DNA of 64,000 nucleotides, from positions 186,001 through 250,000 of the IMG/VR virus record IMGVR_UViG_3300030102_006934; one strand, given 5' to 3'. A model generated the notes under the pieces. It did not search any database. It was given only the letters and a program-made list of their open reading frames with translations, and was not told the origin of the DNA. The position numbers were made by a program, and so were the translations under genes. Below, piece after piece: positions 1,512-23,566 of the stretch. Every line of letters starts with the position of its first letter. The stretch's first letter is position 1.

Positions 1512-1513
1512 TT

Positions 1514-3154: not shown

Positions 3155-3163
3155 AATAATGAT

Positions 3164-6322: not shown

Positions 6323-6378
6323 ATTATTAGTCTTTTTTATAAATTTTAGCTATTTATAATAGTAAAAAGAAAGAATTA

Positions 6379-6612
6379 ATGGAACAAGATAATAAATACA
6401 GAACATCAGACTTATATTTAACAGCTTATTTAAAATTTAAAGGTTTTAAAATGGAAGTTGAAAAAAATAATAAAAAAGCGACTTTCGTATTTGAAAGAAC
6501 GGAAGAAATAATGAAAGAAGTTACTAATTATTTAAATGAGTCAGGTTCTTGTGAACCTCTTTTATATGCTAATTCTATTAAGAATTTAAAAAATTTATTA
6601 TATAATTTATAA
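6379..6612 (+). CDS. DUF5659-like small phage protein
   Basis: YRTSDLYLTAYL...ATFVFE pattern; has its own late-promoter motif. Confidence 0.6.
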   Translation: MEQDNKYRTSDLYLTAYLKFKGFKMEVEKNNKKATFVFERTEEIMKEVTNYLNESGSCEPLLYANSIKNLKNLLYNL

Positions 6613-6885
6613 TTTTTTTCATATTTTTTAGTCTTTTACTAAAAACCTACCTATTTATATAAAAAGAATGGAGTTAAACCATTCGAATATTAATATCAAA
6701 TATATAATATTTCCAATTTAAATTTATATTAAAATCTAGTGGGTAGTTTTGTTTTAACTTCAGAAATACCCAACATCAAATATTTTTATTAATCAACAAA
6801 ATTAAGATTTGAATAACAAATAAAAATCTATATTAGATTTTTAACACAAAAGAGTGTTTAATAATTTGTTAAAAAAAAAATAATT

Positions 6886-9800: not shown

Positions 9801-11505
9801 TACAATCAATGATTCGATTACTGATGAAAGAAACAAAAGAACAACGGCAGATAACGCTTTAGAGTCTAAGATTAATTCTGATATCTCTACTGAAAAGTTA
9901 GCTAGAGAAACTGCTGACCAATCATTAGTAACTAAGATTGATTCTGATATCTCTACTGAGAAATTAGCTAGAGAAACTGCGGACAATTCATTAGAAGCTA
10001 AGATTGATTCTGATATCTCTACTGAGAAATTAGCTAGAGAAACTGCGGACAATTCATTAGTAACTAAGATTGACACAGATATGTCAAACGAAGTTGTAGC
10101 TAGAGAAACATTAGAAAAAACTTTAGATGCTAAGATTGATTCTGAGATCTCTACTGAGAAATTAGCTAGAGAAACTGCTGACCAATCACTAACAACTAAG
10201 ATTGATACAGATATGTCAAACGAAGTTGTAGCTAGAGAAGCATTAGAAAAGAACTTAGAGTCTAAGATTGACACTGAGATCTCTACTGAGAGATTAGCTA
10301 GAGAAACTGCTGATGCTGAATTAAATGGTAAAATCACTGATATAATCTCTAACACAGATGTAACAGCTTTAGATTCATTTAGTGAAGTAAACAACCACTT
10401 GAATAGACTAGAAGATAACCACTTACAATCAATCTCTGTAAATACAGTATCTAATGGTAATGGTGATCTAATAGGTTTATATTCTCAAGCTTGTTTAACT
10501 GGATTTAAACAAGGTACAGTACAAGTCTTTTTAAATGGTCAACTTCTTACTGAAGGGGTAGACTGGCAAGAGGCTGTGGCTTACACTGACTTAAATAGCT
10601 TACCTGGAGAAGGTGTAGCTGTAGGAGCTGTAAAATTACTGTATACTGGTAATGTAAACGATTCTCATGTTATCTACGCTGTAAAACATTCTGATGAAAT
10701 AGTGTATGGTGGAACACCAGTAGCTGAAGAACCTAAAAAGGATGAAGGTCCAGGTTATGAAACACCAGCAGGTCCAGGTTATGGAGCACCAGTAGAAAAA
10801 AATCCCACACCGGGAGCGGGAGCTGAAGTACCTAAAGGTCCAGGTTATGGAACAATAGTTGAGGAACCTAAAAAGGATGAAGGTCTTGGTTATGGATACG
10901 GATATGGATACGGATACGGATACGATTCAGTAAAACCTAAACTTTCAGCGGAAGAGGAAGTAAATCAGTGGATGTCAACGTCAATTAATGATTATAGTAT
11001 GAAACATGGTACTCTTCAAAGAGAACCTAACGCTAAAACTATGTTTGACGGAATCATCGATGCGGTAAACCAATCTAAAGGTTATGAAAACGCCAAAAGA
11101 TGGTTTGGATTCGTAGGTGTTGTACATGAAGCACTATCTGAAGGGTTAGAGCTAGGATACGATTGGGACACTTTCTTTGATTTATTCGCTGAAGCACTAG
11201 GACACCAGTGGAACGGTAGTTGGAGTAACCCAGGTAAGGCGTTAGCCGCGGATTTCTTTAATGTTGTTAACAATAAGGAAATTTTCAGTCCAAAATACGT
11301 GGAACAAGTTGGATCGAAGTGGAATGAGCAAGAGTTAATGAAAACAAATGCACAAAGCTACTTCATGATGACTCAACCTACTACTGGATGGTTTACTCAG
11401 GAAGGTCTAGATTACTGGAAACCAGGTTCGTTATATAAAACTCATATACAAAATACAGAAAGTACATGGGTTGACTTACCGATTCCATTTGATACTAAAG
11501 GATAA
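6886..11505 (+). CDS. Very long coiled-coil fibre protein (11/22-aa repeats) with C-terminal globular domains
   Basis: 22-aa units such as IDTDMSNEVVAREAADSSLTTK; three neck-like interruptions; VFLNGQLLTEGVDW module; GPGY/GY linker; aromatic tip domain. Confidence 0.8.
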   Translation: MANTKIVLNRQSDLILNNAKIVDPSGIVKGDLPGLVDDLANLNAADLTEASFRVAKDNSLEAKIDSDVSSARQQLNSAREAGDNSLEAKINADVSTEKAAREAGDLSLTTKVDADVDAEKSARKSADLSLETKVNVDISTEKLARETDVSNEKAAREAGDLSLTTKVDADVSTEKAAREAADLSLTTLVETEMSNEVAAREAGDLSLTTKVDADVSSEKSEREAAVTAEASARVAGDTLLQSNIDTFESRHDSEMSSEISAREAADLAEASSRLAADTILQSNLDTEEAERLADVSTLQLNIDNESSRAQVQEVANADAIAAETSNRIVDVNAEEARAIAAEGSLDTKLGVEENARIAGDANLQSNIDVEKGRIDAILSASTADADSFAEIVQLINAVDTENDNAFASYVLSNDAALSTAIANSEDADEEIESSLSSEVARAEAAESSLDVALAGEASARLAADQAHDAAISQEIVDRTAGDQALQNSLNNEISDRVVADQTQAANLSTEVARAEAAESSLDTALVNEVSSRIADVNAEEARAIAAEGSLVIKIDSDIASEASTRLAADISLTTKVDTEMSSEASSRVAGDNSLEAKIDSDMSSETSSRVAGDNSLEAKIDSDMSTEKLARETADSDEAAARVAGDNSLEAKVNTDISTEKLARETADSSLTTKIDTDMSNEVVAREAADSSLTTKIDVDMSNEVVAREAADSTEAAARVAGDNSLEAKIDADISTEKLARETADNSLEAKIDTDMSNEVVARETADQSLVTKIDTDMSNEVVAREAGDNSLEAKIDADMSDEVVAREAGDNSLEAKIDVSISNEVVARETADSSLTTKIDSDISTEKAARETADSSLVTKIDTDMSNEVVAREAEDKALEAKIDSDISTEKAAREAADLSLTTKIDTDMSNEVVDRKAEDDALEAKINVEKGRIDTILDGSTVDLDQFKEVVSFVEEIDLENDANLLAAVNTINDSITDERNKRTTADNALESKINSDISTEKLARETADQSLVTKIDSDISTEKLARETADNSLEAKIDSDISTEKLARETADNSLVTKIDTDMSNEVVARETLEKTLDAKIDSEISTEKLARETADQSLTTKIDTDMSNEVVAREALEKNLESKIDTEISTERLARETADAELNGKITDIISNTDVTALDSFSEVNNHLNRLEDNHLQSISVNTVSNGNGDLIGLYSQACLTGFKQGTVQVFLNGQLLTEGVDWQEAVAYTDLNSLPGEGVAVGAVKLLYTGNVNDSHVIYAVKHSDEIVYGGTPVAEEPKKDEGPGYETPAGPGYGAPVEKNPTPGAGAEVPKGPGYGTIVEEPKKDEGLGYGYGYGYGYGYDSVKPKLSAEEEVNQWMSTSINDYSMKHGTLQREPNAKTMFDGIIDAVNQSKGYENAKRWFGFVGVVHEALSEGLELGYDWDTFFDLFAEALGHQWNGSWSNPGKALAADFFNVVNNKEIFSPKYVEQVGSKWNEQELMKTNAQSYFMMTQPTTGWFTQEGLDYWKPGSLYKTHIQNTESTWVDLPIPFDTKG
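7040..10320 (+). repeat. 66-nt (22-aa) degenerate coding repeat array
   Basis: Recurrent gctagagaa(a/g)ctg...tcatta...ctaagattga units. Confidence 0.9.
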
Positions 11506-11561
11506 GGTAAATGAAACGTTAGTTTTTAATGTAATTATATTGTATAATTTACAACAAATGG

Positions 11562-11594
11562 TATGGGGGTGTGTAAACACCCCCATATTTATTT
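11562..11594 (+). terminator. Rho-independent terminator after the fibre gene
   Basis: TATGGGGGTGT-GTAA-ACACCCCCATA followed by TTTATTT. Confidence 0.8.
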
Positions 11595-11639
11595 ACCATT
11601 ACTAATTTAATAAATATTTATTGTTAAACACTTATAGAT

Positions 11640-12758
11640 ATGTCTACTCAAAAAGAAAATAAAATGAACCTTTTAATATGGACTAGAACTGGGGAAAGTC
11701 TAAAAATAATAAATGAGTCTTTGGAAAAAGAATTTAAAGAAAAATATAACCTTTTAAATTATACTAAAAGGGGTGATATATTGTTAATGCACCACATTCA
11801 TTTAGACGATTTATCTAAATTCAGTAGAAGAATACTTATTCAACCAATGGACGGAACTGTTATACATCCACATATTATAGAAAAAATTAATAATTTTCAT
11901 TACATAGTTACACCATCTAATATTGGTAAAGAATTATTAGAAAACAATGGAGTTACTAAGCCTATTAAAGTAATACCTAATTATTATGATGATAACTTAT
12001 TGGGTGATGACAATGGTTTCTTTTCTAGTTTATTTAATGAAAAAAAATATACTTTCTATACAGAATCTACTGCTACACATAGAAAGAATATTAATAGGAC
12101 ATTAAGAAATTTTTTAAAAGAATTTACTGAAAAAGATAATGTTAGGTTAGTGATAAAATTAAATGAGGTATCAAAAAGTAGAGTTTCAGTACTTAAAAAA
12201 CTATTAAAAAAATACCCAAATCACCCAGAAGTAATTATTATAAATAAAAAGTTACCTAAAGAATATCTATACTCAATAAAAAAAGGTATAGATTGTTATA
12301 TTTGTTTATCGTATATGGAAGGATTTTGTATTCCATTATTAGATGCTGTAGTGTTAAAAAAAGATATAATTACTTTAGATACTAAAATCAGTGGTTATAG
12401 GGATTTTATAAATAAAGATAACTCTATTTTATTACCAGTGAAAGAGATATCTACGTTTTTATCTCCAGGAGATGAATGGATTTATTCGAAAAATTCCAAA
12501 TGGGAGAACGTTGATTATGTCGAATATAGAAAAGCTTTAAGGACTGCATTTAATGGTGAATATACTTTCAATAAAAATCAAGACTATAGTCAATATAGTC
12601 AAAAAAATGTTATGAGCCAATACAATGAACTACTAGATGTTGTTTCCAATGAAGTACTAGAAAGGGAAATGAAAATTAAAGAATTAGCACAACTTAGATA
12701 TGATGAACATTTTAGTAAGTTTAGAATGAATCCTAATTTAAATAGAAGAATAGATTAA
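11640..12758 (+). CDS. GT-B glycosyltransferase (GT4-like)
   Basis: IVTPS, VIPNY, HRKNI and SYMEGFCIPLLDA (E-x7-D variant of the EX7E motif). Confidence 0.8.
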   Translation: MSTQKENKMNLLIWTRTGESLKIINESLEKEFKEKYNLLNYTKRGDILLMHHIHLDDLSKFSRRILIQPMDGTVIHPHIIEKINNFHYIVTPSNIGKELLENNGVTKPIKVIPNYYDDNLLGDDNGFFSSLFNEKKYTFYTESTATHRKNINRTLRNFLKEFTEKDNVRLVIKLNEVSKSRVSVLKKLLKKYPNHPEVIIINKKLPKEYLYSIKKGIDCYICLSYMEGFCIPLLDAVVLKKDIITLDTKISGYRDFINKDNSILLPVKEISTFLSPGDEWIYSKNSKWENVDYVEYRKALRTAFNGEYTFNKNQDYSQYSQKNVMSQYNELLDVVSNEVLEREMKIKELAQLRYDEHFSKFRMNPNLNRRID

Positions 12759-13573
12759 TTAAACACTCTTTTACCGTACCAAAGTTGGTGGTAGTGTGTA
12801 TTACCTCCATCGTATAATAAACTTTGGTGGTTATCAATTTTAGGTTTTCCTATTATTTCACCATTCCTTTCGTCAAAAATCATTTTTCTACCTATTTCAT
12901 CGAGTCTATAGTCTAAAATTAAAGAATCATTATTTTCTTTTAATCTAATCTCTTTTGGTGTATTACTTTTGTAAGTTTTAAGATTAATAGTAGTACCTTT
13001 AAAAACCCCCATAAACGCCTGACCTAAAGCTACTGGACCAGTTATACCCAAAGTAGAGTGAGTATAATTTTCTTCTTCTATATTTTTTTTAGCTATTTCC
13101 GTTACTCGATATACTACGGGGTCTAATGGTTTTACACACATTAATGCATTATATAAACCTAATTTATCACTCAAACTATCCCTACATAAAACCCTGTCAA
13201 AACCACTACATATATTATTATATGGTACATATATTTCTTGTGTCATATCACCATAACATCCCCCATATTTGTAGAGTAATAAGTACCTAAATAAATCGGC
13301 TTTGTAAGCAGTAGGTATTAATTTATTGTAGTGTAGTAAGTAACTGGGGTTAAAATCTTTAATGAAATTATAACAATCATCGTTATCAAAATAAACAAAA
13401 TCATAATCAGGGTTTAACTTAATGGTATCTTTGTAAACCCCCATAACTACGTTAGGTATATCTTCTATTGCCCACTTACCAGTTCTAAAAATTATTTTAG
13501 GTATCTCGTCAACAAATATATCTACTTTGTCATATTTTTTGATGAACTGTCTATATGTTATTAAACCTGACAT
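12755..13573 (-). CDS. GT32/OCH1-like glycosyltransferase (DxT variant)
   Basis: IPKIIF, AYKADLFRYLLLYKYGGCYGDMT, ITGP. Confidence 0.8.
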   Translation of the reverse strand: MSGLITYRQFIKKYDKVDIFVDEIPKIIFRTGKWAIEDIPNVVMGVYKDTIKLNPDYDFVYFDNDDCYNFIKDFNPSYLLHYNKLIPTAYKADLFRYLLLYKYGGCYGDMTQEIYVPYNNICSGFDRVLCRDSLSDKLGLYNALMCVKPLDPVVYRVTEIAKKNIEEENYTHSTLGITGPVALGQAFMGVFKGTTINLKTYKSNTPKEIRLKENNDSLILDYRLDEIGRKMIFDERNGEIIGKPKIDNHQSLLYDGGNTHYHQLWYGKRVFN

Positions 13574-14751
13574 TCATCGTACAAATTAGTTTTATAATTA
13601 TATACCATTTCACTATTTCCACCTTTCCATAAATTTTCTATTAAAGTATCGTAAGCTTCTATTATGTTTTCATTTTCAGTGTGGTATCTTTGTAACACTA
13701 AATCATTTTTCTCATTGTATGAATCTAAATTTTTATCATGATTCTCTAATATGTACGATAACATTTTAGCTCCCTCTATTGTGTCAGAACCTTCGTAATA
13801 ATAACCTAAGTCAGCACACATATAAGCGTTGTGTAAGACGGGATAACCTAAATAAACGGCATCTAAATAAAGGTAGTTTAATGGGTTTAAAATTTGATGG
13901 CATACTAATATATCTAGGTGTTGTGTTAGAACATACGCTGTCTGATATCTAGCTTCGGCAGATATTTTATCGTCCTTAAAAAGGTCAAAAGTTTTTATAA
14001 ATGACATAAAGAGTTTATCTTCTTTAAGTTTAGTAGCATTTGTTATTCTCAATTTATCTATATAATTCTTACCAACCAGACCACGATAACATTCCTCGAC
14101 TATCATAGTTGGTATTAAACAAAATTTTACGATATTTAAATTGGGTTCCATTATACCTATAATTTTCTTTTCTTTAGTATTATCGTATTGCCAACCTTTT
14201 TTATATATATTTTTTCTAAAACCAGACTCTATTTCAACAGTTTTTTCATGTAGGAATTTTTGGTTCCATAAAAAGGGTACCATTAAAGCATTCGTTCTAT
14301 GTAAAGTTTTATAATAACCGTTATTAACTTCATGTTGTTGCGGTACATACCATAATTCATCTAATTCTTGTTCAAACTCACCAGTATTACTACCTTCACT
14401 AAATAATATTTCTTCCATGGATAAAACATAGTTATTACCACATTTATATGAAACAACCTTTTTGTCACCACTTTCTCTGAATTTTTTTAAATCACTATCC
14501 AACATTTGGCCACCCATAGATATAATTAAATCCATTTCCATAAATTTGTTTTTAACATAAAAAATATCAATATCTTTTAAGTAGTATGGTTTTTTCGTGA
14601 AATCAACGTCAAATATGTTCAATATACATATTTCATATTTTTTTTTGGATCTTTTAAGTAGGTCCACTAACATTAGGACATTCTGTTTGATTCCGTTTGT
14701 CCAAATTGATTCGTCATTAGTTTTTAATCCTAAAGTTATACCTATTTTCAT
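13561..14751 (-). CDS. DUF2827-family protein (putative GT-B fold)
   Basis: MKIGIT..SIWTNGIKQN, GIMEPNLNIVK, HQILNPLNYLYLD, GYPVLHN, LGYYY. Confidence 0.75.
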   Translation of the reverse strand: MKIGITLGLKTNDESIWTNGIKQNVLMLVDLLKRSKKKYEICILNIFDVDFTKKPYYLKDIDIFYVKNKFMEMDLIISMGGQMLDSDLKKFRESGDKKVVSYKCGNNYVLSMEEILFSEGSNTGEFEQELDELWYVPQQHEVNNGYYKTLHRTNALMVPFLWNQKFLHEKTVEIESGFRKNIYKKGWQYDNTKEKKIIGIMEPNLNIVKFCLIPTMIVEECYRGLVGKNYIDKLRITNATKLKEDKLFMSFIKTFDLFKDDKISAEARYQTAYVLTQHLDILVCHQILNPLNYLYLDAVYLGYPVLHNAYMCADLGYYYEGSDTIEGAKMLSYILENHDKNLDSYNEKNDLVLQRYHTENENIIEAYDTLIENLWKGGNSEMVYNYKTNLYDECQV

Positions 14752-14774
14752 TTTTTAAATATTATTTTATTTGG

Positions 14775-15326
14775 TTATCTATTATTATTGCAAAATCTTA
14801 TAAATCTATCTACTATTTCTTTTTTCTCCCCCTCTGTTTTTGAATTTATCCAAATCCATATAAAAGATTCTTCTATCTTCTTAATTTCAGACTTTTTAAT
14901 TTCTATAAGTTTGTTGAACAAATCTAGTTCTAAATCAGATACCTCGACATCGATATCCAATTTTTCACAAATGATATATAACTCCAAAACATCATTTAAA
15001 TTATTAGCTCTCGTAGCTTCTAAATAATAATTATTTAATACCCCTGAATTTACTTTATCGGGGTGAGTTTGTTTAACAATTTCTCTATATATTTTTTTTA
15101 TTTTACTTTTGGTTTGGTTTGGTATATTTTCGTTTTTTATTTTAACCTCTTCTTTCTTAATAGGACCATTCTCCTGATTATCTTTTTTTTCCTTAGTGAA
15201 AGTTTCCTTTAGGAATTCTTCTCGATACTCATCTACCATATTATTCTTTAATTCATAATCGGTATTTAACAAGTTATACTCTTGTATTATTCTTTGTATT
15301 TGTAATTTTTTTATTTTATAGTTCAC
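14775..15326 (-). CDS. J-domain (DnaJ-like) protein
   Basis: IKKIYREIVKQTHPDK contains the HPD motif; GTG start. Confidence 0.7.
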   Translation of the reverse strand: MNYKIKKLQIQRIIQEYNLLNTDYELKNNMVDEYREEFLKETFTKEKKDNQENGPIKKEEVKIKNENIPNQTKSKIKKIYREIVKQTHPDKVNSGVLNNYYLEATRANNLNDVLELYIICEKLDIDVEVSDLELDLFNKLIEIKKSEIKKIEESFIWIWINSKTEGEKKEIVDRFIRFCNNNR

Positions 15327-15401
15327 GTCTATAAATATTTTAATAAAACTGAATATTCATTTTTTTTTAGATATTTATAGTATATATAAAAACAAATTAA
15401 A

Positions 15402-16034
15402 ATGGTAGAATTTAAATACGCTTGTCCCATAGGTAATTATTGTTTTTCAGCGGCTTTACTTAACATGATAAAGTCTAGGGAGATGGCCCTCCCCTTTGAT
15501 TGGTTATTTACTACACCAAAATTTACTACAGAAATATTAAAAAATGACTTCCAAGATTTTTTAGATCCTAAATATTATACAGATATAGCATTAAACGAAC
15601 CAGATAATGAAAGACAAGCGGGTCACACTTTGTATCATGAAAACTTTTTTAACCACAAAGATCCAAGACAAAAATTAGACTATGATTACTATGTTAGATG
15701 TGTTGATAGGTTTAGGGAATTCATAAAATTAAAGGGTAAAAAGTTATTTATATGTTCTTACAAAAATTTAGAAAGTAAGATGGATGATTCGGTAATGTCT
15801 GAGATTTTCGAATTAAACAAAACATTATCAGATATAACTCAAGATCACCACCTTTTATGTCATATTAATTACCCAAATAATGAAGATTTAAAACATGAAA
15901 TAACAAAAATGGGTAATATTACTTTTTTTGAATTGTACACAAAAGAGAATAATCATGGTTTAGGGTACGCTAACAATGAAGATAACGAATGCTTTTTTGA
16001 AGTATTTAATAGTTTGTTTAAACATAAAAAATGA
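15402..16034 (+). CDS. DUF1796-like (putative papain-like) protein
   Basis: CPIGNYC...ALPFDW...FNH...YYVRCVDRF. Confidence 0.65.
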   Translation: MVEFKYACPIGNYCFSAALLNMIKSREMALPFDWLFTTPKFTTEILKNDFQDFLDPKYYTDIALNEPDNERQAGHTLYHENFFNHKDPRQKLDYDYYVRCVDRFREFIKLKGKKLFICSYKNLESKMDDSVMSEIFELNKTLSDITQDHHLLCHINYPNNEDLKHEITKMGNITFFELYTKENNHGLGYANNEDNECFFEVFNSLFKHKK

Positions 16035-16762
16035 TACCAAAAATAATATATAAAACTGGTCCTTTTGAAAAATCAAATTTACCCAATGAAATAGAAACTA
16101 TTTTCAATAAAACCATAAAAGACAATCCAGAATGTGAATTAGTTTATTTTGATGACGTACAGTGTTTGGAATTTATTACAAAAAATTTTAATAGTAGAAT
16201 TTTAAAAACTTATAATTCATTAGTACCTACAGCTTACAAAGCAGATTTATTTAGATATTGTGTGCTTTACCAAAAAGGTGGGATTTGGAGTGACTTAACT
16301 CAGACATTTATTGAACCTATAAATAGTTTTATAGACTTTGAAAAAGATGATTTTATACTAGTTGAGGGTGGTTACATTCCTTGTGCTGAAAAAAGGGGGG
16401 TTGAGATAGCTTTTATGGCCTCTAAACCTAAAAATGAAATTTATTTAAAAGCAATAGAACAAATAATAAAAAACGTAGAATCTAATTATTATGGGTGTAG
16501 TTCATTTAACCCAACGGGACCCATTATGTTTAGGGAATTAATAGAGTCTGGTGGTGTCACTTATAAATTAGGTTTTAAATTTGAGAGACTTGATGATAAC
16601 TCTAGTAACAATGACTTTATTTGTTACGAAAATAGGTTTAACGGTGATAAGAAAATAATCATAAAAACTAGAACTATTAACCATAGTAAATATCTATATT
16701 ACGAAGCAAATAAACCACACTACTCTGAATTACATAGAGATAAAAAAATATACAAAAAATGA
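16031..16762 (+). CDS. GT32-like glycosyltransferase (DxT variant)
   Basis: MIPKIIY, AYKADLFRYCVLYQKGGIWSDLT, TGP; paralogue of 12755-13573. Confidence 0.8.
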   Translation: MIPKIIYKTGPFEKSNLPNEIETIFNKTIKDNPECELVYFDDVQCLEFITKNFNSRILKTYNSLVPTAYKADLFRYCVLYQKGGIWSDLTQTFIEPINSFIDFEKDDFILVEGGYIPCAEKRGVEIAFMASKPKNEIYLKAIEQIIKNVESNYYGCSSFNPTGPIMFRELIESGGVTYKLGFKFERLDDNSSNNDFICYENRFNGDKKIIIKTRTINHSKYLYYEANKPHYSELHRDKKIYKK

Positions 16763-17502
16763 TACCAAAAACAATATTTCAAACACATAAATCCATGACT
16801 TATGTTATGGATAATAATAGGTTATTCGATTGCTACCAATCTTGGGATGTAAAAGGTTATACCCATAAGTTTTTTGATGATAAAAAAGCTGATGATTTTA
16901 TGAAGGAAAATTTTAATGATATATATGAAATTTACCATAATCTACCTCTACCAGTGATGAAAGCTGATCTATGGAGGTATTGTGTTATATACCATTATGG
17001 GGGTATATATGCTGATATGGATACTATATTTATAGGGGATGACTTAGATTCCCTATTTCAAAAAGAATCAGATTTAATTTTAACACCAGAATATCCACGT
17101 AATGAGGCTTTATGTCAGTGGGTTTTTGCGGCACCTAAAGGAAGTCCTTTATTAAAAAGTGTGATTGATGAGTCTGTTAAAAGAATTAAAGAGTGTAATG
17201 ATTTCAAATATGAACACATGGTACATAACTTAACTGGACCTAAAGTTTTTACAGAGTCTATAGAAAACTATTTAAAAGAAAATAATTTAACGGTTTTTGA
17301 TGGAACTGATAAAAATCAGTATGTTAATGAGTATAAAAATAAAGTTATGTATGTACATGACTCTCATTGGTTGTATAATAATCATGTTGAACATGTCTAC
17401 AGTGGCCAATGGGAAGGTGGTTGGATAACTGATGTAAATGAATTTACTGGTATAGAACATATAAAAATAACCTTGGATAAAGAAGGCAAATCTAAAGAAT
17501 AG
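16759..17502 (+). CDS. GT32/OCH1-like glycosyltransferase
   Basis: MIPKTIFQT, KADLWRY..YGGIYADMD, CQW, TGP, H.YSGQW. Confidence 0.85.
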   Translation: MIPKTIFQTHKSMTYVMDNNRLFDCYQSWDVKGYTHKFFDDKKADDFMKENFNDIYEIYHNLPLPVMKADLWRYCVIYHYGGIYADMDTIFIGDDLDSLFQKESDLILTPEYPRNEALCQWVFAAPKGSPLLKSVIDESVKRIKECNDFKYEHMVHNLTGPKVFTESIENYLKENNLTVFDGTDKNQYVNEYKNKVMYVHDSHWLYNNHVEHVYSGQWEGGWITDVNEFTGIEHIKITLDKEGKSKE

Positions 17503-17506
17503 AAAA

Positions 17507-18412
17507 ATGGAGTTACCCAAAAAGATACATTTAACATGTCCTAATAAGAATAAAATAGAAAACCCTATATGGGTGGAGTGTTTAAATAAGTATTATGAAC
17601 TTTATGATGACTATGAAATAATTTTATATGATGACTCTGATATCTATGACATAATTGATGAGTATTACCCACTATTTTTAGAAAAAATTAAAAAAATAAG
17701 TGTCGGAGCTGTTTTATCAGATTTATTTAGATATCTAATACTTTATTTAGAAGGTGGTATTTATTCTGATTTAGATTGTTTACCACTAAAAAAAATAGAC
17801 CCTTTACTAGACGTAAATTATAGATACTTTCATGGAGATGAAAATAGGGGTAATAATTTATTTGTTTATGAAAATAATGAAAACATCATAGATAGTAGGT
17901 GGGATTTTTGTAGTAATGTATGTGATAATAGTGTTGAGTTAGATTATGACCATTATTTAGGGATGAAAACATTAAAATGTTTGGGTCATAATATAGACAT
18001 TAAAAATACATCGACTATTTTATCTTATGAAGTACATAATGATTGGCATCAAGTTGATCAAAATTTACTAAAAAATCAAAAAATTTGTTATAAAAATTTA
18101 GGAATAGCACAATGGTTTATTATAACAGAACCTAAACAAGAAATATTTTTAAAAATGTTTATGTCCTGCATGGATAATTTAGATGACCTAGTAGATATAA
18201 AAAAAAACATGGTTAACGTTAATAGAGATGATTATCATTACAATATTATATCTAAAACTGGTCCACTAGCTTTCACTAAAATGGTGGTTGATAATATGCA
18301 TGATAAAATTAAAATATTACCTTCTGATTTTTTTTGTGGGGGTTCTTGGAAGAAAGTTCCTTTTACAAAAAACTCTTACATATCACATAAATTCACATCT
18401 AGTTGGTTATAA
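17507..18412 (+). CDS. GT32/OCH1-like glycosyltransferase
   Basis: LPKKIH, SDLFRY..EGGIYSDLD, AQW, TGP, HKFTSSW. Confidence 0.85.
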   Translation: MELPKKIHLTCPNKNKIENPIWVECLNKYYELYDDYEIILYDDSDIYDIIDEYYPLFLEKIKKISVGAVLSDLFRYLILYLEGGIYSDLDCLPLKKIDPLLDVNYRYFHGDENRGNNLFVYENNENIIDSRWDFCSNVCDNSVELDYDHYLGMKTLKCLGHNIDIKNTSTILSYEVHNDWHQVDQNLLKNQKICYKNLGIAQWFIITEPKQEIFLKMFMSCMDNLDDLVDIKKNMVNVNRDDYHYNIISKTGPLAFTKMVVDNMHDKIKILPSDFFCGGSWKKVPFTKNSYISHKFTSSWL

Positions 18413-18427
18413 CACTTAATAAAAAAA

Positions 18428-19126
18428 ATGAAAAAAGAAGTGGGTAATAGGGTTATAATTGTTGGTGATAGTCACGCTTTACATGGTTGGGTTGATTTCC
18501 AATCTGATACAAATAAACACACTTATGATGAAAGTAGTGGGTTAGACTTAAATGAACAGTGGGTGGATAATGTATTTATAAAATCACATTCTTTCGCTGG
18601 TACTTTATGTTATACTTTTAATAAAGAAGATTTTGATAGGTTTGATATTCGTAAGTTTGCTATATCTGACGGTGATATTTTAATTTTTAGTTTTGGTGAG
18701 ATAGATTGTAGGTCTCACATACACAAATATATTAATAATGAAAAATCTTACAAAGAAATTATTACACCTATTGTTACTAATTATTTTTCCACTATAAAAA
18801 GAGAAGTAAATAAATTAAATAAAAATTTAAAGAAGATTTGTGTATATAATATTATACCACCGACAGAAAAAAAATATTTAGATATTGCTGGTCATGTGTC
18901 TTGTATTGGTTCGGATGAAGAGAGGAAAAATTACTACCAATACTTTAATAAATTAATTAAAAATAAATGTTTAGAAAATAATTTTATTTTTATTGATGTT
19001 TATAAAGAACATTCAAATGTGAAAGGTTATTTGGATAGGAAATATTCTGATGGTGGTGATTTTGGTGATTTTCACCTAAAAAAATCAGAACATATTTTTA
19101 ATTTTTTAAAAAATAATATACTTTAA
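18428..19126 (+). CDS. SGNH/GDSL hydrolase-like protein (possible sugar acyl esterase/transferase)
   Basis: IVGDSH block I, FGEIDCR, C-terminal D-F-H. Confidence 0.7.
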   Translation: MKKEVGNRVIIVGDSHALHGWVDFQSDTNKHTYDESSGLDLNEQWVDNVFIKSHSFAGTLCYTFNKEDFDRFDIRKFAISDGDILIFSFGEIDCRSHIHKYINNEKSYKEIITPIVTNYFSTIKREVNKLNKNLKKICVYNIIPPTEKKYLDIAGHVSCIGSDEERKNYYQYFNKLIKNKCLENNFIFIDVYKEHSNVKGYLDRKYSDGGDFGDFHLKKSEHIFNFLKNNIL

Positions 19127-19136
19127 ATAAAAAAAA

Positions 19137-19568
19137 ATGAGAAAAGTAGTTATAGTTAGTGGGTACTTTAACCCAATTCATAAAGGACATTTAGAACTTT
19201 TAAGAAAGGCAAAAGAATTTAGTGATGATTATGTCATAGCCATAGTTAATTCAGACTTACAGAGAGAACTTAAGGGTTCAAAAGAATTCCAAGAAGAGAA
19301 CGAAAGACTAGAAATAGTTAGTTCAATAAAATACGTTGGCCACGCTTTAATTTCTATTGATAAAGATAGAACACAAATAGAAACTTTAAAACATATTCAC
19401 AATGAATATGGTAAGGTATGGGAACTTTATTTCGCGAATGGTGGGGACCAAGATAATAATTCAATACCAGAAAGCTCAATTTGTGGTGAACTAGGGATAA
19501 ATCTTTTAGATGGCCTTGGTGATAAAATACAATCTAGTAGTTGGTTACTAAAAAATAAAAACAAATAA
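19137..19568 (+). CDS. Cytidylyltransferase-family nucleotidyltransferase (RfaE/TagD-like)
   Basis: SGYFNPIHKGH (HxGH), FANGGD, KIQSSS. Confidence 0.85.
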   Translation: MRKVVIVSGYFNPIHKGHLELLRKAKEFSDDYVIAIVNSDLQRELKGSKEFQEENERLEIVSSIKYVGHALISIDKDRTQIETLKHIHNEYGKVWELYFANGGDQDNNSIPESSICGELGINLLDGLGDKIQSSSWLLKNKNK

Positions 19569-19569
19569 A

Positions 19570-19914
19570 ATGGAACAAAACGAGAGTAGACCTTGGGGTA
19601 AGTATGAGATACTTCTATCAAGTGATAATTGTAAAGTAAAAAAAATAACAGTAAGTCCAGGTGGTAGACTTAGTTATCAATACCACCATAAAAGAAGTGA
19701 AGTTTGGACAATAACTTCTGGTGTTGCCACAATAACTTTAGATGATGATGTTCAAGACTACAATTATGGAGAAACGGTTTTAATTCCTCAAGGAACAAAA
19801 CATAGGGTTGAAAATAGGGGAGAAGAAGATTTAAACTTCATAGAAGTTCAGTATGGGTCTTACTTTGGTGAGGACGACATAGTTAGAATTGAAGATGATT
19901 ATGATAGAAAATAA
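19570..19914 (+). CDS. Type II mannose-6-phosphate isomerase cupin (ManC C-terminal-like)
   Basis: RPWG, LSYQYHHKRSEVW, KHRVEN, IEVQYGSYFGEDDIVRIEDDY. Confidence 0.9.
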   Translation: MEQNESRPWGKYEILLSSDNCKVKKITVSPGGRLSYQYHHKRSEVWTITSGVATITLDDDVQDYNYGETVLIPQGTKHRVENRGEEDLNFIEVQYGSYFGEDDIVRIEDDYDRK

Positions 19915-19935
19915 CACACTGTAAATAAAATAAGA

Positions 19936-20298
19936 ATGAAAAAAGAAAGAATTGAAAGATTATTGGTCAAACACCCAAGTGGGTATAAAAAAATAAGAAG
20001 AATATTATTTAATTTATACAGACCTATTGTACACCCAAAAAAAAATAAAAAATTTTTTATGTTTAAATTACACCCAATAACTTATATTATGGTAATTGCG
20101 TTTATAACATCTTTTATTTTATATTCAGTGGGTAATGAAAATTGGGCCGTACCTTTTATTACTTGTTGGGCTTTTATACCTACTACTTGGATTTATTTTA
20201 AAATAACCCCACAAACTTGGGATGAGATGGACGATTATGAAAAAGAAATTTTTAGAGGTTTAAATAATAAATCTAGGGATTGGGAACCTATTTTATAG
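19936..20298 (+). CDS. Hypothetical membrane protein
   Basis: Two hydrophobic segments. Confidence 0.6.
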   Translation: MKKERIERLLVKHPSGYKKIRRILFNLYRPIVHPKKNKKFFMFKLHPITYIMVIAFITSFILYSVGNENWAVPFITCWAFIPTTWIYFKITPQTWDEMDDYEKEIFRGLNNKSRDWEPIL

Positions 20299-20335
20299 GT
20301 TTATTAATCACATTAATATTTATAATAAAAAGGTT

Positions 20336-20719
20336 ATGATATACATTGGATTTATATTGTTTTTAATTTCTGGGATTTGTGAAGCGGTTATGGATAAAAT
20401 ACAGTTCCATTACGATAGTTCTATATTTAAAAGAAAAAAGAATCAGCTATTTTGGGACCCTAGGGAGTCTTGGAGAAATAAGTATAAAAATGGTGACCCT
20501 TTAGCTGGTGAAAAATTTTTTTTATCTAAGAGCCTTCTTGTTGGGTTTACCGATGCTTGGCATCTATTTAAACTATTAAGAACTTTTTGTATGTTCTCTG
20601 GTATATTTTTTTTATTTATACCTTGTAACACTAAAATGACTTGTTTAATGTTTGTTATCATAGCTAGGGTTGTGTTTGGTTTATCTTTCACATTCTTCTT
20701 TAATAAGTTCGATAATTAA
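20336..20719 (+). CDS. Hypothetical membrane protein
   Basis: Hydrophobic termini; SWRNKYKNGD and FTDAWHLFK motifs; TATTTATA upstream. Confidence 0.65.
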   Translation: MIYIGFILFLISGICEAVMDKIQFHYDSSIFKRKKNQLFWDPRESWRNKYKNGDPLAGEKFFLSKSLLVGFTDAWHLFKLLRTFCMFSGIFFLFIPCNTKMTCLMFVIIARVVFGLSFTFFFNKFDN

Positions 20720-20750
20720 TATTTGAAACATATTTATATAAAAACAATAA

Positions 20751-21146
20751 ATGGCACAAAACTTCTTTATTAGAAAAAACTCACAACTACCAGTACTACA
20801 AATGAAAATCATTAACGATGGTAGAAACGACTATAAGAAAATATTCGAGGAACTAGAGAATGCGGCTATAACATTTTCAATGTTAAACATAGAAACAGGT
20901 AGGTATAAGGTTTTTAATCAACCCGCTCTAATAATACCAGTTGAAAATGATAATTGTTTAACAATACAACAAGAATATTATTTAGGGTACCAATTTAAAA
21001 AAAGAGAGGTAAATACGGCTGGTGTATATAAAGGTGAATTTAAAATAGATACTTTCAGTGATGGTTGTTCATTGATATTGCCAATATACGAGGAACTATT
21101 TATAAACGTAATAGATAGTTTTGTTAATTCTAAGATAGTTTGTTAA
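20751..21146 (+). CDS. Putative structural protein (BppU N-terminal-like Ig fold)
   Basis: FFIRKNSQLP, TAGVYKGEFKI; late motif upstream. Confidence 0.5.
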   Translation: MAQNFFIRKNSQLPVLQMKIINDGRNDYKKIFEELENAAITFSMLNIETGRYKVFNQPALIIPVENDNCLTIQQEYYLGYQFKKREVNTAGVYKGEFKIDTFSDGCSLILPIYEELFINVIDSFVNSKIVC

Positions 21147-22970
21147 TTAAAAATAACCACTAAGTAATTCACCAAACAAATCATTTTCTATATCCATAGA
21201 TACGTGTTCATCACCTATTACAGTGTCTATTATTTTTCTTTTCTTTTCTAGTATTTTAAACATCATCTCATCAATAGTACCTACGGCTATAGGGTAATAC
21301 ACATTGGTTGTTGACGTACTACCTATCCTATGAGCTCTATCTTCCGCTTGTGAGTGGTTTGAGGGTACAAAATCTAAATCATTCATAATAACTGTTTCAG
21401 CTTTGGTTAGGGTTATGGCTGTACCAGCTGAAATAAGATTACCAACAAAAACTTTAACATTATCGTCTTCTTGAAATCTATCTATCGAATTTTGTTTACT
21501 GTTTGCATTCATTTTACCGTTATGACCAACCGCTAACCCACCAAAATGGTTCATTAAATAATCAAAGGAGTGGGTAAAGTTAGTGAATATAATAACTTTT
21601 TGACCATTTTCTACCGCTTGTTCAGCTAATTCAATGGTTAATTTAGTTTTTTCTAGAGAGAGGTACTTTCTTAAAACTATTAACTCTACCATATGTCTAC
21701 CCGAACCTAATTTTTTACCCTCTGATTTGGCCCAAGCCAAGTACTCATCAAAAACTTTATGATACTGATTCATATCCTCTATTTCTACGTAGTATGGTGC
21801 CACTATTTTAGGTGGTAAATCTAAATGGTCTTCTTTTTTTCTTCTAAGTATTAAGTTTTTAGTTCTATCATGTAGTTCTTCTAAGTTAGAAGCCCCATCA
21901 GTTATCCATATATCTTTATATGCACCAGACTTCAACCTCTTTTTAAATTTTTTACCATCACAATATCTAAACGCGAATTGTTTCCAACTAGCTGTAACTG
22001 GTGAATCACATATATTTAATAGGTTAAAGAAGTCCATGGGTCTATTTGCTATGGGGGTACCCGTTAGTAACCAACGTTTTTTAATTTTCTCCGTTACTTG
22101 ATTCATTATTTTAGTTCTATTAGCTTTTGGGTTTTTCACCATGTGTGCTTCATCCATTATAACTAAATCGAAACCTTCTTCTACTAGTTCTCTACGTATT
22201 TCATGTTCTTTATATTTTTTTCTACCATCTGTGATGGTGTGAAAATTTTTTAGAATATCATAATTTATGATAGTATACTTTTTAGGGTTCCAATGTCCAG
22301 ACTTGATAATTGATATCTCATCCTCTGGTATATAAGCATTGATTTCACGAAACCAATTTATTTTAGCATTAGCTGGACAAACGATTAATATTTTCTCCGA
22401 TTTAGATTCTATAGAAGCTATAGTAGACATTAATGTCTTACCCAAACCCATATCATCCCCTAAAATACGATTATTCTTACTTAACAAAAACTTAATACCA
22501 GATTCTTGGTGTGGGAAAACACGCCAACCTCTTTTATCTAACTTTTGGTATTTATCGAAATCTACCTCAACCTCTACCTCAACATCTAGTAAATTTTCAT
22601 AAACTTGTGTTTTAGATAAATAAAAGGTTGGTGAATACTTTTGATTTTTAAATAATTTTCCTTTGACGTGATAACTTTTTTCAGTTTCACCTAAAACCCA
22701 TTCTACCAAAACTTTTTGTGGTATGTGACTTAGTTCGAACTTAGTTTGTAATTGTTTACCCTGAAATTCGTTTATATCTACGACTTTGTTTATTTCTACT
22801 GGGTCTCTATCGAAATTTAATTCTATATATTCTGCTGTACTGGGTGATATTGGAAAGTCTCCTTCTTTTTCTATTCTATCTCTTAGAGATAATAAATATT
22901 CATTAATGCCACTATAACTCTTAAGTTTAACCAGAGCTTTTCTGTTTTTCAACTTACTAATATCTAACAT
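21147..22970 (-). CDS. SNF2-family (SMARCAL1/HARP-like) helicase/translocase
   Basis: DDMGLGKT, DEAH, LTGTP, QAEDRAHRIG. Confidence 0.92.
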   Translation of the reverse strand: MLDISKLKNRKALVKLKSYSGINEYLLSLRDRIEKEGDFPISPSTAEYIELNFDRDPVEINKVVDINEFQGKQLQTKFELSHIPQKVLVEWVLGETEKSYHVKGKLFKNQKYSPTFYLSKTQVYENLLDVEVEVEVDFDKYQKLDKRGWRVFPHQESGIKFLLSKNNRILGDDMGLGKTLMSTIASIESKSEKILIVCPANAKINWFREINAYIPEDEISIIKSGHWNPKKYTIINYDILKNFHTITDGRKKYKEHEIRRELVEEGFDLVIMDEAHMVKNPKANRTKIMNQVTEKIKKRWLLTGTPIANRPMDFFNLLNICDSPVTASWKQFAFRYCDGKKFKKRLKSGAYKDIWITDGASNLEELHDRTKNLILRRKKEDHLDLPPKIVAPYYVEIEDMNQYHKVFDEYLAWAKSEGKKLGSGRHMVELIVLRKYLSLEKTKLTIELAEQAVENGQKVIIFTNFTHSFDYLMNHFGGLAVGHNGKMNANSKQNSIDRFQEDDNVKVFVGNLISAGTAITLTKAETVIMNDLDFVPSNHSQAEDRAHRIGSTSTTNVYYPIAVGTIDEMMFKILEKKRKIIDTVIGDEHVSMDIENDLFGELLSGYF

Positions 22971-23047
22971 AACTTATTAAATATACAAACATTTTTAATA
23001 AAATAAATGAAATGGTATTTAATAGATATTTATATAAAAAAACATTT

Positions 23048-23566
23048 ATGAGTAAAAAGAAATTCCCTATTTCAAGATTACATAGATTCTATGACTACAC
23101 TGATTTTAATCTAGAGGATGAGATGGCTCGTGAATTCGTTGAGGGTGATTTAAATTTTACTGTGGTCTTATTTAGAGTTGATAGGATTAAAAGTCAAACA
23201 GATGATGTTTATGGTGAATCTAGTACTCAAGAAATAAGGTTTAAACCACCTATTGAAATAAAAGTTAGACCACTATTAGAAAAATCAGAGTCAAAAGCCT
23301 ATTCTGAAGGTTTTGGTAGAATAGAAGAGTATGGTAATTTTACTTTTACTGTGTTCGTTACCCATTTAGAAGAACTCAATGTGGATATAACCTATGGTGA
23401 CTATATAGGTTACTCAGATAGAGAAGATAATATTAAGTATTTTACTGTTGTAGATGATGGTAAAATATTTTCAGATAACCAACATACTAGACTTGGGTAT
23501 AAAGGTTATTATAGAACTGTTGTTTGTACTACAGCTGATGAAAATGAATTTAATCCAAACTACTAA
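23048..23566 (+). CDS. Neck/head-closure protein (gp14-like)
   Basis: TDDVYGE motif; lies before the terminator and sheath genes. Start moved to ATG 23048 because TATTTATA sits at 23027-23034. Confidence 0.6.
   Translation: MSKKKFPISRLHRFYDYTDFNLEDEMAREFVEGDLNFTVVLFRVDRIKSQTDDVYGESSTQEIRFKPPIEIKVRPLLEKSESKAYSEGFGRIEEYGNFTFTVFVTHLEELNVDITYGDYIGYSDREDNIKYFTVVDDGKIFSDNQHTRLGYKGYYRTVVCTTADENEFNPNY

Follow-up and report, generated by a model that had tools for sequence, protein, structure and literature searches.

Why does a 380-kb marine phage carry a series of glycosyltransferase and sugar-related genes directly beside the gene for its giant coiled-coil fibre? To address this question we analysed a window of 64,000 nucleotides of the phage contig (IMG/VR record IMGVR_UViG_3300030102_006934, positions 186,001 to 250,000), in which the genes of interest occupy positions 11640-19914. 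The original prediction had described here one GT4-like, four GT32-like and one DUF2827 (GT-B-like) gene, together with a J-domain protein, DUF1796, an SGNH hydrolase, a cytidylyltransferase and a type II PMI cupin, organized in three units. This gene content was confirmed, as all eleven ORFs are present. The features of the locus are as follows.

6886-11505, plus strand: giant fibre gene (1539 aa), the proposed acceptor
11562-11587: GC-rich hairpin of eleven pairs between the fibre gene and the GT4 gene, terminator-like on both strands
11610-11621, plus strand: ATATTTAT promoter-like motif, 18 nt upstream of the GT4 start, with a second copy at 11586-11592
11640-12758, plus strand: GT4-type GT-B glycosyltransferase (372 aa)
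12755-13573, minus strand: GT32a (272 aa), last gene of the minus-strand unit
13561-14751, minus strand: DUF2827 protein with a predicted GT-B fold (396 aa), the proposed fibre glycosyltransferase
14775-15326, minus strand: J-domain protein (183 aa, HPD at 88-90), first gene of the minus-strand unit
15331-15378: back-to-back ATATTTAT motifs (15337-15331 on the minus strand and 15372-15378 on the plus strand) in the 75-nt gap between the two divergent units
15402-16034, plus strand: DUF1796 protein (210 aa)
16031-18412, plus strand: three tandem GT32 genes, GT32b (16031-16762), GT32c (16759-17502) and GT32d (17507-18412)
18428-19126, plus strand: SGNH-like protein (232 aa), a candidate glycan O-acyl esterase or transferase
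19137-19568, plus strand: HxGH nucleotidyltransferase (143 aa)
19570-19914, plus strand: stand-alone PMI-type cupin (114 aa)

Most of the family assignments are supported by Pfam. The GT4 gene matches Glycos_transf_1 (4e-11) and phrog_2170, a glycosyltransferase family (1e-19). The four GT32 paralogues match Gly_transf_sug at 47-52 bits against a cutoff of 23 (2.5e-12, 5e-12, 1e-13 and 8e-13 for GT32a to GT32d) and are 25-33% identical. Only GT32c and GT32d have a canonical DxD, whereas GT32a and GT32b have DxT in its place, which is conserved in their orthologues. The DUF2827 protein matches PF10933 at 8e-95, covering 361 of 362 profile positions. DUF1796 (PF08795) was found at 25 bits against a cutoff of 23; the ESM Atlas places this protein in DUF1796 clusters that are mostly viral, and contains a cyanobacterial fusion of DUF1796 with GDSL lipase and CBM20. 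The nucleotidyltransferase matches CTP_transf_like (45 bits, 1.7e-11), its HxGH motif reading HKGH, and the cupin matches MannoseP_isomer (5.5e-34).

Two of the identities are weaker than had been implied. The J-domain is below the Pfam cutoff for the single sequence (23 against 27.8 bits), but it is confirmed by an invariant HPD in 30 homologues and by a profile that finds almost only J-domains in the PDB (Ydj1, 6e-5). The SGNH-like protein gave no Pfam, NCBIfam or PDB sequence hit, and its assignment rests on GDSH and DxxH motifs seen in the sequence and on a predicted-structure TM of 0.75 to an SGNH cluster and to a domain of giant-virus GT32+GT8 proteins. The suggestion that the glycan might be acylated rests on an SGNH-like fold only. 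Similarly, the proposal that the last two genes supply nucleotide sugars is weak. The cupin corresponds only to the C-terminal domain of GMP/PMI, matching residues 359-466 of GMP_PMI at 123 bits against a cutoff of 373. The transferase is nearest to glycerol-3-P or ethanolamine-P cytidylyltransferases in the PDB and to the RfaE domain II, and is below every NCBIfam equivalog cutoff.

We next asked whether these genes belong to a single system. Comparison with related loci reveals two layers. The J-domain gene followed by DUF2827, next to a coiled-coil fibre gene, forms a core which is conserved across a large clade of aquatic huge phages; in most huge-phage loci the J-domain gene lies directly upstream of DUF2827, often with a 4-nt overlap. 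Every other enzyme occurs only in the window's contig and in one close relative (L002), and the nucleotidyltransferase and the cupin are absent even from L002, the closest relative. The GT4 protein is 66% identical to its L002 counterpart, and the accessory genes as a whole are 66-91% identical between the window and L002, like other phage genes, so they are maintained. In L002 the gene order is J, GT32a, DUF2827. Other relatives hold a sulfotransferase (with APS kinase in one of them, L003) or other glycosyltransferases in this slot. The locus is therefore not one system, as had been assumed, but a conserved pair with a strain-specific cassette.

DUF2827 is linked to fibre-family genes in two phage lineages with different gene arrangements. 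Of 73 viral loci with DUF2827, 55 have a fibre-family homologue in the flanks examined (within 10 kb), 30 as the immediate neighbour and 43 within three genes, and several of the other 18 loci are truncated. The association occurs in two independent arrangements. In huge phages, J then DUF2827 runs convergent with the fibre gene, whereas in smaller phage contigs, with only 35-40% identical DUF2827 and no J gene, the fibre gene is followed 75-124 nt later by DUF2827 on the same strand. However, most fibres of this family have no DUF2827 nearby (it is present in 2 of 78 loci), and glycosylation is therefore not needed for the fibre as such. In relatives the module also borders DNA polymerase B and SNF2 helicase genes, so position alone is not specific to structural genes. 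In bacteria, 72 of 80 loci hold 2-4 tandem DUF2827 genes, and of six large neighbours scanned, four are trimeric autotransporter adhesins, one is a classical autotransporter and one is a collagen-repeat protein, which agrees with a preprint (10.64898/2026.01.22.700529).

The fibre itself is a coiled coil with about 30 clear copies of a 22-residue repeat (aAREaaDxSLTTKIDxDxSxE; period 22 by autocorrelation), two copies of a conserved central element (RIDAIL..D.D.F.E.V..[IV]D.END) and a Pro/Gly/Tyr-rich C-terminal region. When fibres were chosen only by their non-repeat central element, the repeat motif was present in 15 of 17 DUF2827-linked fibres against 3 of 46 others, and two of those three lie on contigs that do carry DUF2827 just outside the flank. 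This co-occurrence has to be read with caution, since the motif was defined after seeing this fibre, the loci are phylogenetically related so that the p value of a Fisher test overstates the support, and many huge-phage fibres have only 1-5 motif copies. In nine DUF2827-adjacent adhesins, SL[ST]T occurs 21-102 times against 0.4-3 expected.

Is DUF2827 a glycosyltransferase? We found 797 homologues, at least 120 of which are 62-100% identical, many of these on contigs of 100-310 kb. The best Foldseek matches of the predicted structure are GT-B enzymes (BshA at 8e-5, TM 0.5), although the model is only moderate (pLDDT 68) and its structural neighbours are generic GT-B enzymes, not specifically protein glycosyltransferases. 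The protein retains all 27 positions that are at least 95% conserved across 205 phage and bacterial sequences. DUF2827 also occurs fused to GT32 (N- or C-terminal), GT2, GT9-like, GT25, PLOD-GT and methyltransferase domains, and would therefore work in multi-step glycan assembly with the same GT32 family that surrounds it here.

These observations bear on two alternatives. In the first, DUF2827 and the J protein would be non-enzymatic fibre-assembly chaperones and the accessory cassette an unrelated moron. The J-domain points to folding, phage fibres often need dedicated chaperones encoded next to them, and the accessory genes are absent from nearly all relatives. However, the 27 conserved positions are polar or aromatic and are shared from phages to Burkholderia in a GT-B scaffold, DUF2827 is repeatedly fused to catalytic GT domains, and the accessory GT genes are inserted exactly between DUF2827 and the fibre gene and in the adjoining slot. 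We consider this possibility improbable. In the second, the locus would hypermodify phage DNA with sugars to evade restriction. The GT-B fold includes DNA glucosyltransferases, T4 AGT and phage SP-15 glycosyltransferases appear among weak structural matches, SNF2 helicase and, in relatives, DNA polymerase B are neighbours, and diverse DNA glycans made by viral glycosyltransferases have been described (Pyle et al. 2024, as cited in PMC12619734). However, the structural matches to DNA glycosyltransferases are poor (TM 0.27-0.33), and none of the window's genes scanned has a hydroxymethyl-pyrimidine synthesis hit, with several large ORFs scanned only against PHROGs or left out of the scan. Moreover, bacterial DUF2827 genes sit in tandem next to adhesin genes, and the fusions are to protein- or glycan-type GT domains, including PLOD-GT. 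DNA modification is the least likely of the readings considered.

A further alternative is that the enzymes remodel host envelope glycans (LPS, capsule or a teichoic-acid-like polymer) during infection, which could block superinfection or stop progeny phage from sticking to debris. The GT32 genes also hit Caps_synth, the best NCBIfam hit of the GT4 protein is a lipoteichoic-acid glycolipid-anchor transferase (though far below the cutoff), the nucleotidyltransferase resembles TagD and RfaE domain II, and similar gene sets of marine cyanomyoviruses have been read in this way (PMC12801897). However, no enzyme in the locus has a membrane segment, and no flippase, polymerase, ligase or polyprenyl-phosphate priming transferase was found, which argues against O-antigen or capsule work. 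The core enzyme tracks fibre and adhesin genes, not envelope gene clusters, and the locus uses the promoter-like motif of structural genes rather than TAnnTTTG. This reading seems unlikely.

Does the locus share its expression signals with the structural genes? The TATTTAT sites at 11615, 15337-15331 (minus strand) and 15372 are present, and all three units start behind the ATATTTAT motif. The motif is not over-represented in the window as a whole (61 sites against 54 expected) but is strongly placed, as 25 of the 61 sites lie in the 5.8% of DNA that is intergenic and 16 lie in sense orientation 12-47 nt upstream of gene starts, including the sheath gene and a gene with a weak, below-cutoff T4_baseplate hit. 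It lies 2-12 nt upstream of the J-like start in 27 of 35 distinct related loci. TAnnTTTG is seen only upstream of 29952-30320 (minus strand), 38880-39719 (minus strand) and 50845.

The late expression put forward in the original prediction is, however, only an inference from this shared motif. In three metatranscriptome runs from two samples, the fibre gene is covered at depth 20-130 up to the hairpin, its RNA contigs ending at 11398-11571. In contrast, 11650-16040 shows only three or four small contigs at depth 3-5.5, at least about tenfold below the fibre gene, while DNA from the same sample is even at about 4-6. The RNA runs also hold little or nothing of 16000-19950. Being assembled contigs, these data show presence rather than absence. 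The hairpin has the longest stem (11 pairs) of the 11 terminator-like sites in 6000-23500, against 5.3 expected.

Taken together, the original interpretation is partly supported, in that virion-protein glycosylation is the best reading and can now be narrowed to the adjacent fibre. We propose, with moderate confidence, a two-layer module for cytoplasmic glycosylation of the giant coiled-coil fibre. In this view, DUF2827 most likely transfers the first sugar to Ser or Thr of the fibre repeats (the aD-x-S-L-T-T-K/R-I motif) before or during trimer assembly, and the J-domain protein, encoded in the same operon, most likely recruits an Hsp70 (DnaK) so that the long fibre chain stays accessible. 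The GT4 and four GT32 transferases would extend the glycan, although two of the latter lack the second Asp of DxD, DUF1796 and the SGNH-like protein would tailor it, and the nucleotidyltransferase and cupin would adjust donor supply. As related phages hold other tailoring genes in the same slot, the glycan would differ between strains. Our analysis establishes the gene content, family membership, synteny, fusions, motif co-occurrence, shared promoter-like motif and absence of membrane segments, whereas the glycan and the enzymatic activity of DUF2827, the acceptor, the site, the order of steps, the sugars, the role of the J-domain and the timing are inferred from genomes.

It remains possible, though doubtful, that virion proteins other than the fibre (capsid, sheath or tube) are glycosylated, as in mycobacteriophages, the link to the fibre being only positional. 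The locus lies within the structural region and uses the structural-type motif, the accessory glycosyltransferases have no demonstrated link to the fibre beyond adjacency and the DUF2827-GT32 fusions, and the sheath is unusually large (938 aa). Against this, DUF2827 adjacency is to the fibre gene specifically, in two arrangements, the repeat motif co-varies with the presence of DUF2827, and the bacterial partners are fibrous adhesins. In mycobacteriophage virion glycosylation (Freeman et al. 2023, Cell Host Microbe, cited in PMC12619734 and PMC12801897), phage-encoded glycosyltransferase genes likewise lie within or beside the structural genes and virion proteins are modified in the cytoplasm. 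There, however, the acceptors are the C-termini of the capsid and tail-tube subunits and the hosts are actinobacteria, whereas here the inferred acceptor is a fibre repeat, the enzyme families are different (DUF2827, GT32) and the host is probably a member of Bacteroidota.

The proposed module also resembles the cytoplasmic glycosylation of bacterial autotransporter adhesins by a transferase encoded next to its substrate (the TibC/TibA and Aah/AIDA-I heptosyltransferases, and HMW1C/HMW1). In both, a soluble transferase gene sits beside the gene of a long, repetitive, Ser/Thr-rich fibrous surface protein, and DUF2827 itself is associated with adhesins in bacteria (10.64898/2026.01.22.700529). 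However, the substrate here would be a virion fibre and not a secreted adhesin, DUF2827 is not homologous to GT9-type heptosyltransferases or to GT41 HMW1C, and the phage module adds a J-domain partner and a multi-enzyme extension cassette. The 'Moraphages' and other aquatic jumbo phages of Bacteroidota (PMC12619734) are aquatic phages of 200-300 kb with predicted Bacteroidota hosts, DnaJ/DnaK homologues and several glycosyltransferase orthogroups in the core genome; that study does not link the glycosyltransferases to a fibre and does not mention DUF2827.

The toolkit further overlaps with the glycosylation machinery of giant viruses, which make chlorovirus capsid glycans and Mimivirus fibril glycans, although the present genome is that of a tailed phage with a T4-type sheath. 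As for Mimivirus fibrils, the proposed target is a surface fibre. The GT32, DUF1796 and SGNH-like families of this locus have their nearest Atlas clusters in Nucleocytoviricota and in phages, those of the three tandem GT32 genes being from phages and giant viruses. DUF2827 has a homologue in Pyramimonas orientalis virus 01B (4e-12), and a GT32-DUF2827 fusion lies on a contig labelled as a giant-virus MAG (L073).

The window belongs to the IMG/VR contig 3300030102_006934 of 380,343 bp, which is present in DNA runs of marine metagenomes, and the phage is known only from metagenomes. It encodes a T4-type tail sheath of 938 aa, a protein with tape-measure-like PHROG hits (phrog_167), neck and adaptor proteins, and ORFs of 1539, 1768 and 4098 aa. 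The G+C content is about 30-38% in the structural genes (31-38% in those flanking the locus) and falls to 26-28% across 12001-20000, which fits a cassette with a different history from the backbone. The only TAnnTTTG motifs lie upstream of a few genes and sigma-70-type promoter matches are not enriched (78 against 96 expected). This fits a Bacteroidota host, as proposed for similar aquatic jumbo phages (PMC12619734). A nucleotide search with the whole locus and a protein search with DUF2827 against 50,697 phage records found nothing, whereas the 1539-aa fibre gave only three weak hits, in Erwinia phage Kaldavass and Psychrobacter phage Psymv2, so that no cultured relative could be identified among these records.

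The gene content described in the original prediction was confirmed. All eleven ORFs are present and nine of the eleven family assignments hold at Pfam level. Four genes match GT32 (Gly_transf_sug, PF04488) with 46.7-51.8 bits against a cutoff of 23. GT32c (DMD) and GT32d (DLD) contain the DxD metal-binding motif, while GT32a (DMT) and GT32b (DLT) lack the second Asp, as do their orthologues in L002, a close relative on a 55-kb contig. The J-domain (DnaJ, PF00226) falls below the Pfam cutoff for the single sequence (23.0 against 27.8 bits, covering only 24 residues) and a fold search with the whole model found nothing significant; the assignment therefore rests on the sequence profile. Its HPD tripeptide at residues 88-90 is invariant in 30 homologues and is flanked in the model by helices 70-87 and 95-109, and a profile of the family finds almost only J-domains in the PDB (Ydj1 6e-5, DnaJ 5.5e-4).

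The SGNH-like protein of 232 aa has no Pfam, NCBIfam or PDB sequence match, the PDB search giving only chance-level hits. The assignment rests on GDSH near the N-terminus and DFGDFH near the C-terminus, visible in its sequence, and on a predicted-structure TM of 0.75 to an SGNH cluster. The presumed type II phosphomannose isomerase consists only of the C-terminal cupin of GMP/PMI, matching positions 359-466 of 467 with 122.7 bits against an equivalog cutoff of 373, and lacks the N-terminal nucleotidyltransferase domain of the bifunctional enzyme, although the cupin domain itself is clear (117 bits). The nucleotidyltransferase retains the HxGH motif as HKGH. However, it scores only 36.7 bits against 165 for glycerol-3-P cytidylyltransferase (TagD) and 48.0 against 181.5 for heptose-1-P adenylyltransferase (RfaE II); only the generic cyt_tran_rel domain passes its cutoff. 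NCBIfam gave no specific name for any enzyme of the locus. None of the enzymes has a hydrophobic stretch of transmembrane strength.

DUF2827 (PF10933) is matched in full length, with 318 bits against a cutoff of 25 over profile positions 1-361 of 362. Twenty-seven positions are at least 95% conserved across 205 phage and bacterial sequences and all of them are kept in the window protein, which argues for a conserved catalytic function. Conserved residues include E113, E202, R268, D280 and H307. A PDB sequence search gave only chance-level hits. The AF2 model (pLDDT 68, pTM 0.71) has a well-predicted N-terminal Rossmann domain, and its top PDB matches are the GT-B enzymes BshA, UGTs and WaaG, with E down to 8e-5 and TM about 0.5. 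The support for a predicted GT-B fold is moderate because the C-terminal domain is poorly modelled.

TATTTAT is not over-represented in the window as a whole (61 sites against 54 expected) but its placement is far from random. Twenty-five of the 61 sites lie in the 5.8% of the window that is intergenic, and sixteen lie in sense orientation 12-47 nt upstream of gene starts, all as ATATTTAT. These include the sheath gene, a gene with a weak, below-cutoff T4_baseplate hit, and the 1768-aa ORF. The three units of the locus start behind ATATTTAT, as originally predicted. In 27 of 35 distinct related loci the same motif lies 2-12 nt upstream of the J-like gene, and it is therefore a conserved signal. 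The element reads ATATTTAT(A) on the coding strand and is a different AT-rich octamer from the T4 late octamer TATAAATA, which lies at about -10; that it marks late genes is an inference. Features that bear on the motif are the following.
6323-6885: a 564-nt stretch upstream of the fibre gene without an ORF of 100 aa or more; TATTTAT sites lie at 6351 and 6652 but none within 80 nt of the fibre start.
14775-15337: the J-domain gene and its promoter-like ATATTTAT, which ends only 4 nt before the GTG start, suggesting a leaderless or nearly leaderless mRNA.
21147-22970(-), 34174-34848(-), 37894-38676(-) and 38880-39719(-): four non-structural genes inside the structural region, namely an SNF2 helicase, a ClpP protease, an Fpg/Nei-type DNA glycosylase and an M28-like peptidase, none of which has the ATATTTAT motif.
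29952-30320(-): a 122-aa gene which, like the peptidase gene, has TATATTTG instead.
Two of the minus-strand non-structural genes have TAnnTTTG.

Contigs of three metatranscriptome runs from two samples were placed on positions 10050-16040. The end of the fibre gene is covered by error-free contigs of 493-885 nt at depth 12-39, with summed bin depths up to 130, which stop at 11398-11571, at the 11-pair hairpin 11562-11587. From 11650 to 16040 there are only three or four small contigs at depth 3-5.5, while the DNA run of the same sample is even at about 4-6 across both regions. The RNA runs also contain little or nothing of 16000-19950. Assembled contigs show presence rather than absence and these libraries say nothing about time, so that the late expression claimed in the original prediction remains an inference. 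Still, the RNA of the locus is at least about tenfold below that of the fibre, and the GT4 gene is not read through from the fibre gene. Low RNA is compatible with enzymes.

Comparison with related loci separates the locus into two layers. L002 has the same genes at 66-91% identity but lacks the nucleotidyltransferase and the cupin, and has GT32a and DUF2827 in swapped order. DUF2827 has 797 homologues, of which the 120 listed are 62-100% identical and many lie on contigs of 100-310 kb. In 73 viral loci collected with a DUF2827 alignment, the GT4, GT32, DUF1796, SGNH-like, nucleotidyltransferase and cupin genes occur only in the window's own contig and, apart from the two genes it lacks, in L002. 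In contrast, the J-like gene is found in 48 of 75 loci and usually lies directly upstream of DUF2827, often with a 4-nt overlap. Annotated relatives show a backbone of gp13, DNA polymerase B, a variable slot, a 127-aa gene, a 65-aa gene, J, DUF2827 and then the fibre gene. Among these relatives the slot holds a sulfotransferase (L234, L236) or unknown genes (L235, L237). In two further related loci, L005 carries HtrL/YibB-like and GlcNAc-transferase-like genes 6-10 kb from the pair, and L003 has a sulfotransferase, an APS kinase and a weak GT9-like gene next to the pair. In the window the slot holds DUF1796, three GT32 genes, the SGNH-like gene, the nucleotidyltransferase and the cupin, with GT32a and GT4 inserted between DUF2827 and the fibre gene.

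The 1539-aa fibre is a coiled coil with a 22-residue repeat and also contains a non-repeat central element, RIDAIL..D.D.F.E.V..[IV]D.END.
8020-8230 and 9700-9910 (fibre residues about 380-450 and 940-1010): the central element, with the consensus EKGRIDAILDGSTVDLDQFAEIVSFVNxIDLENDNALLSAV.
10900-11100 (fibre residues about 1340-1400): Pro/Gly-rich PGYG-type repeats and a run of GYGYGYGYGYGY in the C-terminal region, before a globular end domain.
Fibre-family homologues lie within the examined flanks in 55 of 73 DUF2827 loci, as immediate neighbours in 30 and within three genes in 43. In a second group of smaller phage contigs DUF2827 is only 35-40% identical and there is no J gene. There the fibre gene lies directly upstream on the same strand, and those fibres carry very similar Ser/Thr-rich repeats such as SADTSLTTRLSTEE. 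However, the converse does not hold. The central element has no Pfam match, yet it occurs in at least 416 stretches of the viral contig collection (loci L157-L233 among them), and of the 78 best loci only the window's and L002's contigs have DUF2827 within 10 kb. The element therefore marks a widespread, unannotated phage fibre family, of which DUF2827 is an optional companion in one branch.

Since selecting fibres by BLAST to the repeats themselves makes a motif comparison circular, both sets of fibres were defined only by the central element. The repeat motif [AGS][DE]x[ST]Lx[TASV][KR][IVL] is then present in 15 of 17 DUF2827-linked fibres and in 3 of 46 others, and two of those three lie on contigs that carry DUF2827 just outside the examined flank. 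Shuffled sequences give 0.05 motifs against 70 observed. The motif was chosen after seeing this fibre and the loci are related, and the comparison is therefore suggestive, not conclusive.

In bacteria, a scan of species-representative genomes found 80 loci with DUF2827 at 31-38% identity, mostly in Burkholderia and relatives, plus one 65% hit on a 5-kb metagenomic bin contig. Of the 80 loci, 72 hold two to four tandem copies. A regular expression for adhesin head repeats found only 6 of the 80 loci, and six large neighbours were therefore scanned with Pfam. Four are trimeric autotransporter adhesins, one is a classical autotransporter and one is a collagen-repeat protein. This independently agrees with a 2026 preprint proposing DUF2827 proteins as cytoplasmic glycosyltransferases of such adhesins (10.64898/2026.01.22.700529). 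The exact phage repeat motif is absent from the bacterial adhesins and only the shorter SL[ST]T core is shared. Nine such adhesins contain 21-102 copies against 0.4-3 expected, while the linked phage fibres have 29 against 3.1 and the control fibres 2 against 3.6. As the adhesin counts stand without a comparison set lacking DUF2827, they provide only a lead for a shared acceptor sequence. On a contig binned as a Flavobacteriaceae MAG (L097), a 1244-aa collagen triple-helix repeat protein (176-3910) lies about 4 kb upstream of a DUF2827 gene (8001-9236; 38% identity to the window's), and this contig may be phage DNA binned with its host.

A profile search of 1.8 billion representatives found 1468 DUF2827 clusters. 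Many are fusions with GT32 (at either end), GT2, GT9-like, GT25, PLOD-GT or methyltransferase domains (among them P0121, P0124, P0144, P0152, P0159, P0175 and P0183). One GT32-DUF2827 fusion lies on a contig labelled as a giant-virus MAG (L073:9311-11143, P0134), and a DUF2827 homologue exists in Pyramimonas orientalis virus 01B. The GT32, DUF1796 and SGNH-like proteins have their nearest Atlas clusters among phages and giant viruses, and DUF1796 is fused to a GDSL lipase and a CBM20 in cyanobacteria.

The best-supported reading is cytoplasmic glycosylation of the neighbouring fibre by DUF2827, in which the J-domain co-chaperone would assist and a strain-specific set of transferases and tailoring enzymes would extend the glycan. 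The interpretation given in the original prediction is thus partly supported. While the gene content, the adjacencies, the fusions and the motif co-occurrence were observed in the sequences, sugar transfer by DUF2827, covalent attachment of a glycan to a virion protein, the acceptor site, the sugars, the order of steps, the role of the J protein and the timing are all inferred. Remodelling of the host envelope, virion acceptors other than the fibre, glycosylation of DNA and a non-enzymatic chaperone role are each less consistent with the adjacency, fusion and motif data, but none of them is excluded on present evidence. A further-reaching possibility, which we consider doubtful at present, is that huge aquatic phages use a J-domain co-chaperone, translationally coupled to the so far uncharacterised glycosyltransferase family DUF2827, to glycosylate unfolded fibre chains at a short repeat sequon (core S-L-T/S-T). 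In this view bacteria would use the same enzyme family and a related sequon for trimeric autotransporter adhesins, and the adjacent hypervariable slot of tailoring enzymes would give each phage strain its own fibre glycotype.

Virion glycosylation in phages is established only for actinobacteriophage capsid and tail-tube proteins. A fibre-directed system would extend it to a new virion part and to a new host group. The host is probably a member of Bacteroidota, and the module is widespread in marine and freshwater huge phages. It would also give a function to DUF2827, an unstudied family of about 1,470 clusters at 50% identity. The fibre repeat offers a concrete candidate acceptor, which would at the same time bear on the DUF2827 genes beside Burkholderia adhesins. 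A strain-variable fibre glycan could affect host range, adsorption to particles or mucus, and recognition by host defences or grazers. A full-text literature search for DUF2827 found two papers, neither about phages, and searches on phage fibre glycosylation found no described case. The coupling of a J-domain protein to a glycosyltransferase is, as far as we could find, undescribed.

Two further giant ORFs, of 1768 aa (45483-50789) and 4098 aa (51155-63451), follow the gene with tape-measure-like hits. Around 10850-11050, near the PGYG-type repeats of the fibre, RNA and DNA contigs from other organisms pile up, suggesting a repeat shared with other genomes. In one DNA run (X2), a low-depth contig (2.9) joins position 15403 to 11872 with 28 other letters between, which may represent a co-occurring strain with a different arrangement of the block from GT4 to the J gene.
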